From Octopus sinensis (lineage: Eukaryota), in NCBI RefSeq assembly GCF_006345805.1, contig NC_043003.1:71114001-71178000 (forward strand): 64,000 nt of DNA, read 5' to 3'. The notes beneath the pieces were generated by a model. The model worked only from the letters and a program-made list of their open reading frames with translations, was not told the DNA's origin and did no database searches. Numbering within the stretch: position 1 is the stretch's first letter; the number at the start of each line of letters is the position of its first letter. This document shows positions 19,614-63,757 of this stretch, piece after piece. The translations under genes were made by a program, and so were the position numbers.

Positions 19614-19787
19614 GTTCAAAATCTGCAGATGCTTTGCGTGATCAGTTGAAGCTGGCAATTAAACAGAAAAACAAAGTCAATTTAGAAAGAGCTATTGCAG
19701 AATGCGAAGCGGCTAAATTACCAGAAATTGAAGCTGATCTCTACCAAGCTAAATCCTTTCTCAACTCTCTCGATAGTGGACGTCCAG
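19614..19787 (+). CDS. Repeat exon R1 (174 nt)
   Basis: ttgcag|GT...CCA G|gtaaat; GSKSADALRDQLKLAIKQKNKVNLERAIAECEAAKLPEIEADLYQAKSFLNSLDSGRP; not in ORF track. Confidence 0.88.
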
Positions 19788-20216
19788 GTAAATTTTCCAA
19801 TGGAATTTATTGATATATTTTATACTTTGTGGTGGCAATGCGACACGTTATAAGAGGTCCTCCTTGAAAGACTCGTTATAACATAACCGCTCATATTTTT
19901 CTATGCTGGTAGTTTTACCTGATAAACCTATACTGTTTCATGTTAACTAAAGAAAGTTTTTGATAATGATATAAATCTTATCACAGAAGCCCAGGATACT
20001 GTTATGGATATTCAAGAATTAATGAGAATCAAGATATCGTATTTTGGTCCAGCAAGATAAATGTACAAAATCAACAGAAATCTACCGTACTGTGCAGGAG
20101 CCAGCAAATATGGAGCAGTGTTTACAGGATAGTGTAGCAAATGGAGAAAGCAAATGGGATAGTGTTTACAGACAATCTTAAAAATTCAGACTACATAAGA
20201 CCCTATAGTTCTAGAT

Positions 20217-20475
20217 CAATGGTTCCCAAAGTGGCAGTACTGCCCTCTTGGGGGCGGTGGAAAGACGTTGAAGAAAAGTGGGATGACAATGGGGTGGCCT
20301 AAATGGGGTGATACATGTAAAAAAACATCTTAATAGGTAAATTAGGTTTAAGTTTTATTTGTGAAATACAGCTGTTTTGAATTTGCTGCAGAAAGTGTTC
20401 TATATTTGTGGTGGGAAGGGAAATGTGGCCTGGGTGCCAAGGGGACGACAGCCTGAAAAAGTTTGGGAACTACTG
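20217..20475. mobile_element. hAT (Charlie/Buster-like) MITE, 259 bp
   Basis: TIRs caatggttcccaaa / tttgggaactactg; 8-bp TSD ttctagat (20209-20216) versus ttctacat (20476-20483). Confidence 0.8.
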
Positions 20476-21246
20476 TTCTACATAAATAAAGTCTGGAGAG
20501 AATTGGAGATATTAAAGTTTCTCAATTTTTTGAGGTGTTCGTTTTTATGTTCGTTCAGAGAAAACTTTGGTGGTTTTTTTTTACAATAAAAAGGATGTTT
20601 ACATTTTCGAATATCCCGATAAAAAGGAACAGAAAAAAAGGAAGGTAAAATTTTTTCATAGAAAATTGTAGACGAAGTTTTTGAAATTTACTGGAGATAA
20701 TCTTTTGTCTGTCGGACAGAGAAAACTGTAGTGTTCTTGGAATAAAGAGGATGTTTACATTTTCGAATACTCAGTGGGGAGGGAAATGATAGGTATTCAC
20801 AGATGTAGATATTATGGGTTTTAAAGCTGATTGTTTATGTGTTCGAAAGCTGTAGACATGTAAGTTCCTTAACTTAGTTTGAGGGAAATTCAAAATACTC
20901 ACAGGAAACTGTAGATATTCCAGTCTTTTAGAGTTATTTTTCAGTTGTCCTATTGGGTTCTATCAGTGTTTCTGTGTCTTCAGCTACTGACAGATCAGAG
21001 CTGAGAAGAACACGTCCAGCCGCTGTCACGTTTTATTATTATTATATTCTTTCGGAGTCGATAAATTAAGTTCCAGTGAAACATTGGAGTTGATGTAATT
21101 GACTACGCTCCTCCTCCAAATTTGAGGCCTTGTACCTCCAGTAGGAAAGATTATGATTATTATTATTATCATTACTATTATTATTATTAATAATATTTAT
21201 AGGATTAAGGTAACTCCTCCAGAAGATATAGAAGCAAAAAAAAAAG

Positions 21247-21417
21247 AAGAGTGCCATTGTCATCAAGTGAACGATATTTCGATATCTCGTGTAGAGGAGT
21301 TATCTCAATCCTATAAATTTTAACCAAAATGAAGTAGATTGACACGTTTATTTTTTGAACCTGTGGAAGACACATGATATGTCGAAATATCGTTCACTTG
21401 ATGACAATGGCACTCTT
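21247..21417. repeat. Short inverted repeat (46-bp arms, ~77-nt spacer)
   Basis: aagagtgccattgtcatcaagtgaacgatatttcga pairs with tcgaaatatcgttcacttgatgacaatggcactctt. Confidence 0.75.
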
Positions 21418-21513
21418 GCTTTTTTTGCTATTATTATTATTATGATTATTATTATTATTATTATTATTATTATTATTATTATTATTATTATTATTATTAT
21501 CATTATTATTATG

Positions 21514-22255
21514 AAGCATTTCGTCCGCCTTTATATTCTCAGGTCAAAATCCACCAAAGTCGACTTTGCCTTTCATTCTTTCGGAATCGATAGATTAAGT
21601 ATCAGCGTATTCGACTAGTCCCCTCCTCCAAAATTTCAGGCCTTGTGCCTTTAGTAGAAAGGATTATTATTACTTTTATTAATAAACGTTTCGTCCGTCT
21701 TTATTGTTAGTTTTATTACTATAGCCTCGGGCCGATCAAAGCTTTGTCAGTGGATTTGGTAGACCGAAACTGAAAGAGGCCCGTCATATATATGTACACA
21801 CACACACACACACACACACATATATATATATATGTTTGTGTGTCTGTGTTTGTACTCTCGCCATCGCTTGACAACCGATGTTGGCGTGTTTACGTCTCTG
21901 TAACTTAGCGGTTCGGCAAAAGAAACCGATAGAATAAGTACTAGGCTTACAAAGAATAAGTACTGGGGTCGATTTGTACGAGTAAAGCTAGTGCCCCACC
22001 ATGGTCACAGTCAAATGACTGATACAAAGAGAAAAAAAAAGGAAAAAGAATAAGCATTTCGTCCGTCTTTACATTCTGCTGAGGTTGACATTGCCTTTCA
22101 TCCTCTCGGGTTCGATAAATTAAGTCGACTTTACCATTCATATTTTCGGGGTCAATGAAATAAGTACCAGTTGAACACTGGGGTCGATATAGTCGACTCA
22201 TCCCCTACCTCAAAATTGCTGCCCTTGTGGCAAAATTTGAAACTATTATTATTAT
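21514..22255 (+). mobile_element. Cluster of three SINE copies from two families
   Basis: 21514-21668 and 22052-22255 carry gtcgactttgcctttcat...gataaattaagtaccag. 21715-22040 carries ctatagcctcgggccga...gtaacttagcggttcggcaaaag...cagtcaaatgactga. Confidence 0.75.
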
Positions 22256-61169: not shown

Positions 61170-61985
61170 TTACAGACGGTATCTAATATCAGAGCCTAAA
61201 TGTTGCTATATAATATTCCAGACACCATCGTAGATGCAATCAAAATTCTCTATAAAAACACCATCGCTCAGATTTTATCAACTGTTGGTAATGAAAGTTA
61301 TCTGAAATCATGACTAGAGTAATACCCCCTTGTTGTTCATTGGAGCCCCGGACTACTTATGAATTGCAGCAACTAATGCAAAAGAAACAGACGTCATGCT
61401 TCAACTGTAATAATTCATACAGACTATGCAAATTGAGAAGACTAGGAAATAAATCGAACGTCAATGACAATAAGACTGGTTTCAACCATCCGGAAGAAGA
61501 CATTAAATCATCAAAAGCTACAAACTTCTGTTGCCTGGGATCATGGACAGAAAGCTCAAAGAGAAACAAGAGAGTAAGAACTAAATTGGCGTAATCAGCG
61601 CAATGAACAAGATATCTGTAAGATTGCAAAGAATTCTATTTAGTAGGCTCAAAATACAGTTTTATAAGAGGAACTGTGGAAAACATATTGGTATTTGTAT
61701 CTGAAAACAATAAAAAGCAGGTTAAATGGAACGTGTACCAAGATGTTAAGAACTATCATTCATTGAAAAGCGTACTATATGGAAATTAGCCAATATTATC
61801 AGACTTAATTTATGGGACATATTTGGCAAAGAAAAGACGAAGTTGTACATCAACTATTAATATGAGAAACAGTACATGATAAAAGAGGCAAACCTTGTTG
61901 AATATATGTGGAGCAGTTGCTGGATGGCAGTTACATTGAAAAATTGTATTGCAGAGATGATACAGGAAAGGGAATTATCTAATCG
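61170..61985 (+). mobile_element. Degenerate RTE-like LINE RT remnant
   Basis: Fragments YNIPDTIVDAIKILYKNT, F.CLGSW.ESS..., L.GTCTKMLR, LYG. across many frameshifts. Confidence 0.65.
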
Positions 61986-62247
61986 ACTGCTCACTGGAAT
62001 TCAAGTGTGCTCAACTGAAACATACACACACATCATTCTTCCTCTTTATCTCTCACTATTCTACCCCATCTGTCTCTCTTGCTGTTGCAAAAATGCAGAT
62101 ATCGAAACTTTATTAAATTAAAACAGGAAAAAAAAACAAATGGATAAATCGATTATAATTTATTTATGTTTAACTACATTACGCTTAGATAGGGGTTAAC
62201 ATACTAAAATGTTTTTCTTTATATACACTTTTATTTTTAATCATCAG

Positions 62248-62421
62248 CTACAAAAGCTCCTGATGTATTGGTCAGTCAACTGAAAAGTGCTACAAGACAA
62301 AAAGATAAGGCAGCTCTAGCAAAACTTATCATTGAATGCGAAGAAGCAGGTTATCCAGAGATTGCCAATGATCTTTGGAAAGCTAGAGAAACTCTTCATA
62401 GTATTTGTGGAGAATATGGAG
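62248..62421 (+). CDS. Repeat exon R36 (174 nt, type B)
   Basis: catcag|CT...GGA G|gttaga; ...ECEEAGYPEIANDLWKARETL...; not in ORF track. Confidence 0.87.
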
Positions 62422-62907
62422 GTTAGAGCATATTCTATTTTAGGAATACATATTTCAGTTTGTATTATATATGGTTAACTAGGAAGTTGAATGAACTTAT
62501 ATTTTGTTTTCCTTTGGAATTATAGTCATAGAATTTTAAAACGGAAAGACGATATATATTATTTTCTAGATTCTCTTTTGAGCACTAGCTCCCTAGTATA
62601 CTTCAGAAAATTGTGCGTAAATAACATTCTTAATACCTTTCTTGCATAAACTTATGTTTATTCTAGTTATTCGTAAATTAACTATTTTATAGAATATTTA
62701 TTTTTCTAAATGTTTCTGAAAACAGAAGTATTGCAAAAGTGATTATATTACCCTAATAAAAGAGCAACTATAACAGAAATAGAAGAAATTTTTATGATCT
62801 ATTCTCTGATAGAGTATCTGAGAAAAACAACGAACATAAACATTGCTGCTTTATATAATGACGATAATGTGATATATGTTACTGACTCGTATATATAATA
62901 TTACCAG

Positions 62908-63080
62908 GGAGTCAAACTCCAGAACTGCTTGCTGCTAAATTGAAGAGAGCTACTCGAACAAAAGACAAATATGCTTTAGAGAAAGCAATCAATGAGTGTG
63001 TAGCTTCTGGATTTCCTGAACTGAAACTTGAAATAGCAAAGCAAGAAATTTCCTTTTCAATCTTGAAGATTATGGTAGAG
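62908..63080 (+). CDS. Repeat exon R37 (173 nt, type A, apparent 1-nt deletion)
   Basis: taccag|GG...AGAG|gttaga; ECVASGFPELKLEIA, then the repeat consensus (ARNFLFNLEDYGR) continues in a shifted frame after gcaaagca at ~63035-63042. Confidence 0.75.
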
Positions 63081-63583
63081 GTTAGATATATTTTAAAATT
63101 AATTATGAGCTAAATCTGAAAGTCGTTTTTAAAAGTCGTTTTTAAATCTGAAAATCGGTGTTTGTAAAAATTTGAAAAATATTTATAAGTATTAAAATTA
63201 AATAATAACAAGCTTTTATTATGATATTTTATATTTTCATTTTGTTTTATTCTCTTAAGGCGGTACATATTTAAACTTAAATCACAATTGACTGCATGTA
63301 ATCTGAAATTAAATTTAACAACAAGGAATATAAGAACATCAAATGAAATCAAAATGTGTGGCATAAATGACACTTTTCTATATTTAACAAGTAAATAGAT
63401 ACGAATCAGAGAAAGGTTAACAAATATTGTAAAAAATACTTTTACTCTTATTATGTAACTAAATGACATGTCTACACGTAGTCAATAATGTTGAATGTAA
63501 AAATCGGATAGTATGGATCAAGCTAATGCATGCTTTAGCGAATGAATTATGTTACTTTAAAATAATCCATATTTGATTGGTAG

Positions 63584-63757
63584 GAAGAAATCACCGGGAT
63601 GTTTTGCGGGACATGTTATTGATGGCTATGAAAAGAAAGAGTCCACCAGAATTAAAGAAAGCAATTGAAGAATGTGAAGAAGCAGAATATCCAGAGCTCA
63701 ATGAAGAGCTACGAAAAGCTCGAGATATCCTGGAGAACTTGAGTGGTAGTAGTGGAG
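63584..63757 (+). CDS. Repeat exon R38 (174 nt, type B); gene continues beyond window
   Basis: tggtag|GA...GGA G|gtcagc; ...ECEEAEYPELNEELRKARDILENLSGSSG. Confidence 0.86.

Follow-up and report, generated by a model that had tools for sequence, protein, structure and literature searches.

Uniform phase-1 boundaries in the repeat exons of a giant KY-like octopus gene, and their probable origin in tandem duplication

Part of one giant gene lies in a stretch of 64,000 nucleotides (nt) of the genome of Octopus sinensis (NCBI RefSeq assembly GCF_006345805.1, contig NC_043003.1, positions 71,114,001 to 71,178,000 of the forward strand), which was analysed at its full length and is referred to here as the window; all coordinates are those of the window. 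The protein annotated for this gene, P0006, is 6596 amino acids (aa) long and is laid out as a KY/transglutaminase-like head with immunoglobulin-like (Ig-like) domains, a segment rich in lysine and glutamate (K/E-rich), 94 copies of a short helical repeat and a conserved C-terminal domain. The repeat exons in the window make up the proximal third of the repeat array, and it is the reading phase at the ends of these exons, how it came to be uniform and what it allows in splicing, that is considered below.

The repeat exons were mapped by searching a six-frame translation of the window with a profile made from four repeat open reading frames (ORFs). This detected 40 repeat units between 19604 and 63822, all of them on the + strand, and nothing comparable to them on the - strand. 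Exon ends were taken to be the nearest canonical AG and GT that kept the frame open, every compatible AG and GT having been listed for each unit, which gave 38 exons with AG/GT boundaries (R01 to R38, Table 1) encoding 40 copies of a helical repeat of ~58 aa. The first of these exons begins at 19614 and the last finishes at 63757, and the span that the initial annotation had assigned to the array was thereby borne out. In every unit the acceptor lies 5 nt ahead of a conserved Lys/Thr-Pro start, so providing 2 codon-completing bases, and the donor splits the last Gly codon of a GGGRGG tail directly behind its first G. Exon lengths fall into a few classes, with 31 exons of 174 nt, two of 348 nt (R12 and R15), three of 171 nt (R04, R06 and R20), one of 159 nt (R34) and R37 at 173 nt. 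It had been claimed that all of these exons start and end in phase 1 and that all except R37 are multiples of 3 in length; the lengths proved to be as described (37/38), as did the starting phase (38/38), but the ending phase is 1 in only 37 of the 38, the exception again being R37. When spliced together R01 to R36 encode 2195 aa with zero stops, and this product is an exact substring (aa 883-3077) of P0006, so that the boundaries drawn here coincide with the publicly annotated ones. The boundaries of R37 and R38 agree with those in the Octopus bimaculoides protein P0010.

The five introns upstream of the array in the same gene are in phases 2, 0, 0, 0 and 1, and with phases as mixed as these the phase-1 uniformity has to be regarded as belonging to the array and not to the gene. 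The exons ahead of the array encode the head of the protein. The Pfam family Ig-like_KY (PF23265) was detected at 9666-11027 in three stretches with E=3.1e-59 and 199 bits, against a cut-off of 27, and Transglut_core (PF01841) was detected in the Argonauta orthologue P0005 at residues 94-202 with 25.1 bits, against a cut-off of 23. For PF01841 the window fragment alone was below threshold, the matching O. sinensis residues lying partly upstream of the window. By these head domains the octopus protein belongs to the KY/LTD-1-like family of transglutaminase-like proteins. A literature search by LOC identifiers and for KY in octopus muscle found no paper on this gene. The micro-exon at 19119-19158 is missing from P0068, a model of 851 aa from a related octopus that reads on into the intron after R01.

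Comparison of the repeats with one another revealed a considerable degree of divergence. With R24 as the alignment reference the exons in the window are 32-56% identical to it, and the best paralogue of each repeat is at most 65% identical. Two subtypes alternate along the array: A, with the consensus ...ECE.AGYPELg.DLrKARdtLESLGGGRGG, and B, with the consensus ...INECVAAGMPELD.DIq.ARd.LdiL.GG.GG. Mean repeat identity is ~0.45 at lags 2 and 4, as against 0.38-0.39 at lags 1, 3, 5 and 7. The alternation is not strict, R29 and R30 being A-A neighbours. R12 and R15 are double exons, each encoding B then A without an intervening intron in exactly 2x174 nt. Fused units of the B+A or B+A+B type were also found in the distal part of the gene and in a neighbouring gene (P0016-P0021, P0175), as well as in ORFs of other cephalopods. 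The fusion in R12 and R15 suggests either that an intron was lost precisely or that the older unit was B+A. Any natural pairing in the array would run B-then-A, as in these two exons, and not A-then-B, the order implied when the initial annotation proposed that exons might be skipped in AB pairs.

What a single exon encodes was approached with an AlphaFold2 model of R15, a B+A pair, based on a pair-versus-pair alignment of R15 and 16 other such pairs (17 rows). The model has a mean predicted local distance difference test score (pLDDT) of 78.9 and a predicted template modelling score (pTM) of 0.51. Three helices are predicted in each repeat, at residues 4-17, 20-33 and 36-53 in the first and 62-75, 78-91 and 94-111 in the second, and in the linker between them (51-60, ~8 residues), which coincides with the intron site of unfused pairs, pLDDT dips to 62. 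A pTM of 0.51 implies that there is no fixed orientation between modules. One exon is predicted, on this model, to correspond to one three-helix module with a flexible Gly-rich linker, so that skipping would take out entire modules, and the protein would probably be a long spacer or scaffold of the beads-on-a-string kind anchored by its KY-like head. The repeat matched no Pfam or NCBIfam family above cut-off, and in a sequence search of the PDB the best matches were designed helical proteins at E>=0.005 only. Comparison of the two-module model with the PDB by Foldseek gave no match at E<=0.001, which says little for a model without fixed inter-module geometry.

The reading that we prefer, and to which a probability of roughly 80% may be given, is that the array was produced by duplicating in tandem a unit with a phase-1 intron on either side and that its uniform phase was inherited, within a giant KY-like gene having one module per exon. 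The unit lying between the phase-1 introns would have been either a single repeat or a B+A pair, and each descendant exon would have kept its boundaries, the acceptor leaving 2 bases ahead of the next full codon and the donor splitting a Gly, Ala or Asp codon of the GGGRG/G linker behind its initial G (the slash marks the exon end). Since tandem duplication keeps the frame only when the duplicated unit is symmetric, the uniform phase 1-1 is both a precondition of this growth and a fossil of it. It is one event that has been inherited ~40 times and not a set of 38 coincidences, nor is it a separate adaptation; such uniformity would be far beyond chance were the exons independent, but they are duplicates of one ancestral unit. 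The symmetry is in itself explained by descent and is no evidence for regulated skipping. A uniform phase in a tandem exon array is textbook material and by itself adds little.

The donor sites of the array show features of a different kind. The last base is G in all 38 repeat exons and any donor-acceptor junction will therefore rebuild the full-length codon of the acceptor exon; the proposal that any subset of exons can be skipped in frame accordingly holds, with the junction codon preserved, for all of the exons but R37. In this respect the architecture is more permissive than the initial annotation had stated. The sequence GAG/GTTAG(A/C) is present at 28 of the 38 donors (e.g. 51023/51024 and 44111/44112), and position +3 is occupied by T in 28, C in 4, A in 5 and G in 1. 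A purine at +3 is missing from 32/38 repeat donors and is present in 5/5 non-repeat donors of the same gene. A donor site is weakened in its pairing with U1 by T at +3 and by A or C at +6, and the U1 pairing of the GTTAG donors is probably weak. As the introns are in phase 1, GTTAG also places an in-frame TAG right after the exon, and retention of the intron leads to a stop at the first intron codon in 22 of the 38 exons. The intronic T that has been kept looks selected, which hints at selection on splicing behaviour; it could have a role in regulated or weak splicing or in the instant termination and decay of intron-retaining transcripts, or it could be a founder effect.

Conservation of the array was assessed in two ways. 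At the protein level each of R05 to R38 has a 1:1 orthologue in O. bimaculoides, the order along the array being unchanged, with 84-100% aa identity (85-100% per exon). At the DNA level two genomic contigs from another octopus (Logan, SRR11869391) were aligned to 48926-50687 and 59086-60463, a comparison that takes in three exons, and nucleotide identity was found to be 96.6% for R22, 97.1% for R23 and 92.5% for R34, with no indels, as against 72-83% with indels in the introns that flank them. Over the three exons there were 11 synonymous and 10 non-synonymous codon changes, and both the acceptors and the GTTAG donors were kept in the other octopus. These figures point to purifying selection on the three exons checked, and the exons are best regarded as constrained coding sequence. 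Around the same three exons the flanking introns had no marked conservation beyond ~50 nt of the sort that was sought as the signature of a regulated cassette. Conservation of the exons is indirect evidence that the repeats are not dispensable.

R37 is the one exon that departs from the pattern. Relative to the intact O. bimaculoides orthologue it has a 1-nt deletion near 63041 at GCAAAG and reads GAA ATA GCA AAG CAA GAA ATT, which gives EIAK and then ARNFLFNLEDYGRG in the -1 frame, whereas the orthologue, contained in XP_052825467.1 (P0010), ends ...EIAKARNFLFNLEDDGRG. R37 has its boundaries at the ancestral positions and a phase-1 start, but the assembled sequence does not allow its own frame to reach the donor in phase 1. 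Its inclusion in this state would put R38 out of frame with four stops, whereas the frame is kept if it is skipped. In the annotated O. sinensis protein R36 is followed by the first repeat past the window, R37 and R38 both being absent, yet R38 is an intact exon with normal splice sites and 95% identity to the orthologue in O. bimaculoides. Loss of the two together preserves the A/B alternation, R36 being A and the next repeat B. Two accounts of R37 may be given: either the assembly is wrong at a run of A's, or the exon has become a pseudo-exon very recently and has to be skipped. An assembly artefact of homopolymer length, which would leave the array without any exception, has about an even chance of being correct. 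The deletion is at GCAAAG, precisely where the intact orthologue implies one extra base (K-A-R instead of K-Q-E), the remainder of the exon agrees with the orthologue at 98% identity, the out-of-frame tail still reading ARNFLFNLEDYGRG, and the splice sites are intact; on the other side, exact look-ups of the broken and the read-through R37 ORF gave no match, and R37 was left out by the annotation pipeline rather than flagged.

Public models of the gene have lengths of 1720, 2069, 5242 and 6596 aa and differ always by whole repeats and always in frame. The O. sinensis model is without R37, R38 and nine distal repeats that are present in O. bimaculoides. In the latter species XP_052825467.1 goes from repeat 65 to repeat 79, omitting 66-78, although another model, A0A0L8GL38, does contain 70-78. 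The 2069-aa model, P0173, comes from a third octopus assembly and is identical to P0006 at 996 of 998 N-terminal residues; it contains repeats 1, 2, 48-55 and 89-94, with joins from R02 to 48 and from 55 to 89 at canonical boundaries, all other exons of the window being skipped. An index restricted to the longest product per gene does not have P0173 on record for its gene, which weakly suggests that several isoforms are annotated. The Argonauta model of 1720 aa contains 10 repeats (1, 2, 82, 83 and 89-94) within a gene range of 204.6 kb. Gene predictors can drop symmetric exons at no cost, and differences of this type between models are consequently no proof of skipping.

It is possible, though rather less likely than not, that cassettes or blocks of these exons are skipped in a regulated manner to give length variants, perhaps tissue-specific ones as in the titin I-band. 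Consistent with this are the removal of any subset in frame once R37 is set aside, with junction codons preserved, the predicted equivalence of one exon to one module, the 28 of 38 donors with T at +3 and their probably weak U1 pairing, and several features of the models: the long-range joins of P0173 and the weak suggestion of a multi-isoform gene, the 10 repeats of the Argonauta model over 204.6 kb, the repeats missing from XP_052825467.1 and in part present in the other O. bimaculoides model, and the dropping of intact R38 along with R37 from the O. sinensis model without disturbing the alternation. What argues the other way is that this support comes from gene models, in which symmetric exons can be lost without penalty, and that neither junction reads nor complementary DNAs (cDNAs) were seen; that the distal acceptors of the short models differ between species; that all of the examined exons are constrained and retained 1:1 between species; and that the introns flanking the three exons compared are without marked conservation beyond ~50 nt.

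The titin I-band with its tandem-Ig and PEVK regions is like the octopus gene in that it is a giant modular gene with a unit per exon, symmetric exons and tandem exon duplication. In titin the size of isoforms is set by exon skipping under RBM20 (PMC3575840), and exons with low inclusion are almost all symmetric (PMC12580133). Differential splicing regulated by RBM20 is thus documented for titin (PMC3575840, PMC12580133), whereas the octopus array is known from genomic sequence and gene models. The modules also differ, being Ig and PEVK in titin and a ~58-aa three-helix unit with a Gly-rich linker in the octopus, and no sequence relationship was found between titin and the octopus repeat.

A strictly constitutive array, in which all intact exons are always included, symmetry is a matter of history only and the models differ through artefacts in annotating a difficult repetitive locus, is rather unlikely. 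It would fit with the O. sinensis model carrying R01 to R36 free of gaps and the O. bimaculoides models carrying R03 to R38 contiguously, with the purifying selection on the exons, and with an array that is old and stable, its paralogues being no more than 65% identical and its orthologues 84-100%. It is at odds with R37, which as assembled is not includable in frame, with the long-range in-frame junctions in several independent models, and with the conserved non-consensus donors, which a constitutive array leaves unexplained.

A number of observations must be set against the preferred reading of inheritance by tandem duplication. T has been retained at +3 in 74% of the donors despite deep divergence of the exons, for which descent alone offers no obvious explanation. 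The module structure is a prediction from a shallow alignment of 17 paralogous rows. The public models disagree as to which repeats are included, and the 6596-aa product may not exist as one transcript. Fragments of the array derived from transcripts were not found in the protein collections searched, and neither constitutive inclusion nor skipping has been observed. A 2195-aa query (R01 to R36) found gene models only, and a 291-aa query in which R37 was read through, covering R35-R39, had as its sole match a C-terminal transcript of 408 aa from another cephalopod, 39% identical. Members of the Logan cluster were considered as cDNA and rejected, these being genomic single-exon ORFs. Most exons are probably included in a giant isoform as a rule, and block-wise skipping, e.g. 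from R02 to distal repeats, may give shorter isoforms. For free combinatorial use of the exons, which the initial annotation had envisaged, no evidence was found among the gene models and protein collections searched.

Least probable is the view that the array as a whole has evolved as a length-setting device, in which symmetric exons, the terminal G, weak GTTAG donors and the in-frame TAG would act together, with R02 joined to distal repeats or B+A pairs dropped, to give tissue-specific KY-anchored spacers of ~2,000 to >6,600 aa; were this improbable proposal true, octopuses would have an invertebrate counterpart of titin, assembled from a three-helix module of unrelated kind.

Attempts to find relatives of the repeat involved a search of 1.84 billion representative proteins with the repeat profile. 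Only 249 were matched, and most of these are single-exon ORFs resembling those that genomic contigs of octopus contain. Loosely similar tandem helical repeats were found in the protists Rhodelphis, Breviolum and Polykrikos. Two Haliotis proteins, P0161 ('lim and transglutaminase domain protein ltd-1-like') and P0039, have 2-6 similar copies behind the same head, and a separate protein search identified KY-like proteins with ~2 similar copies in Lingula (P0013) and Argopecten (P0014, 'titin homolog'). The KY-like proteins of these three lophotrochozoan genera, two of them molluscs and Lingula a brachiopod, share with the octopus protein both the head and a helical repeat of the form L..A....D...L..AI.E.E......D...A...L, but in them the copies number 2-6, the GGGRGG linker and the A/B alternation are absent and the C-terminal domain is a different one. 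The octopod array is on this comparison a large lineage-specific expansion, ~20- to 50-fold, of a small and older C-terminal repeat.

Membership of the KY (kyphoscoliosis peptidase)/LTD-1/hillarin family is reflected in the Ig-like_KY domains of the octopus head and in the Transglut_core domain of the protein's orthologue. To our knowledge, known members of this family are ~0.6-1.3 thousand aa in length and none has an array of ~100 repeats. The octopus repeat may bear a resemblance to the H-domains of leech hillarin. Spectrin-type rods are likewise elongated proteins made of tandem three-helix units, but the likeness is one of analogy only, as the octopus units are half as long and are joined by flexible Gly-rich linkers in place of continuous helices. 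Neither a PDB sequence search nor Foldseek gave a sequence or fold match between spectrin-type repeats and the octopus repeat.

The worthwhile part of these results is the gene itself, which encodes an uncharacterised octopod KY-like protein whose C-terminal repeat has been expanded to ~100 copies. If regulated skipping of blocks were true it would be a second and independently evolved instance of the length of a giant scaffold being tuned by the skipping of symmetric exons, and this in an animal with unusual muscle and nerve biology. A practical warning that must be applied to the public models of this gene is that they differ by in-frame blocks and are not trustworthy without transcript evidence.

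Table 1. Exons of the KY-like gene located in the window, with their subtype, length and flanking intron phases
Feature	Type	Position	Strand	Length (nt)	Phases	Remarks
Head exon	KY-like, transglutaminase-like part	1..187	+			cut by window start; exact match to P0006 aa 96-157; phase-2 intron next
Head exon	KY-like	7838..8240	+		2-0	
Ig-like exon	KY-like Ig-like domains	9660..11012	+		0-0	PF23265
K/E-rich exon	probable coiled coil	12846..13223	+		0-0	
Micro-exon	PEDSYFGRPSSTR	19119..19158	+	40	0-1	moves frame from phase 0 to phase 1 just ahead of array
R01	A	19614..19787	+	174	1-1	
R02	A	22702..22875	+	174	1-1	donor GTAAGT; spliced straight to distal repeats in short public models
R03	B-like	27161..27334	+	174	1-1	
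R04	A	28393..28563	+	171	1-1	
R05	A	30276..30449	+	174	1-1	
R06	B-like	30818..30988	+	171	1-1	
R07	A	32185..32358	+	174	1-1	
R08	B	33405..33578	+	174	1-1	
R09	A	33960..34133	+	174	1-1	
R10	B	34478..34651	+	174	1-1	
R11	A	35205..35378	+	174	1-1	
R12	fused B+A pair	36607..36954	+	348	1-1	2x174, no internal intron
R13	B	37713..37886	+	174	1-1	
R14	A	38665..38838	+	174	1-1	
R15	fused B+A pair	39250..39597	+	348	1-1	sequence of structure model
R16	B	40147..40320	+	174	1-1	
R17	A	41792..41965	+	174	1-1	
R18	B	42908..43081	+	174	1-1	
R19	A	43938..44111	+	174	1-1	
R20	B	45056..45226	+	171	1-1	
R21	A	46928..47101	+	174	1-1	
R22	B	49135..49308	+	174	1-1	
R23	A	49841..50014	+	174	1-1	
R24	B	50850..51023	+	174	1-1	
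R25	A	51247..51420	+	174	1-1	
R26	B	51702..51875	+	174	1-1	
R27	A	53439..53612	+	174	1-1	
R28	B	54013..54186	+	174	1-1	
R29	A	54695..54868	+	174	1-1	
R30	A	55984..56157	+	174	1-1	
R31	B	56649..56822	+	174	1-1	
R32	A	57159..57332	+	174	1-1	
R33	B	58403..58576	+	174	1-1	
R34	A, shortened	59914..60072	+	159	1-1	acceptor kept in another octopus
R35	B	60393..60566	+	174	1-1	
R36	A	62248..62421	+	174	1-1	final window exon within annotated O. sinensis protein
R37	B	62908..63080	+	173		1-nt deletion near 63041; not in annotated protein
R38	A	63584..63757	+	174	1-1	intact; gene runs on past window

A second locus with the same repeat is annotated separately on the same chromosome of O. sinensis, outside the window, as LOC115214251 (P0002), a protein of 2023 aa. 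Within it a block of 3-4 repeats recurs ~8 times in essentially identical form, and one of its repeats matches, at 98% identity, a repeat of O. bimaculoides that the O. sinensis model of 6596 aa lacks. P0002 looks either like the product of amplification in the very recent past or like a piece of the same gene that was split off during assembly or annotation.

The introns contain several other features. Longer non-repeat ORFs occur at 41000-41335 (+ strand), 17674-18205 (both strands) and 52991-53344 (- strand); these resemble mobile-element remnants but gave no match to a Pfam family at E<=0.01. The intron between the K/E-rich exon and the micro-exon has a 247-nt inverted repeat, the arms of which (13973-14219 and 14587-14833) are 94% complementary. 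Both arms hold a similar ORF of ~74-90 aa (MSYKT.FTLS.FEKTLYLRSYF...), and a telomere-like (AACCCT)n tract lies between them at 14446-14526. The base composition of the window is ~34% GC and microsatellites are many.

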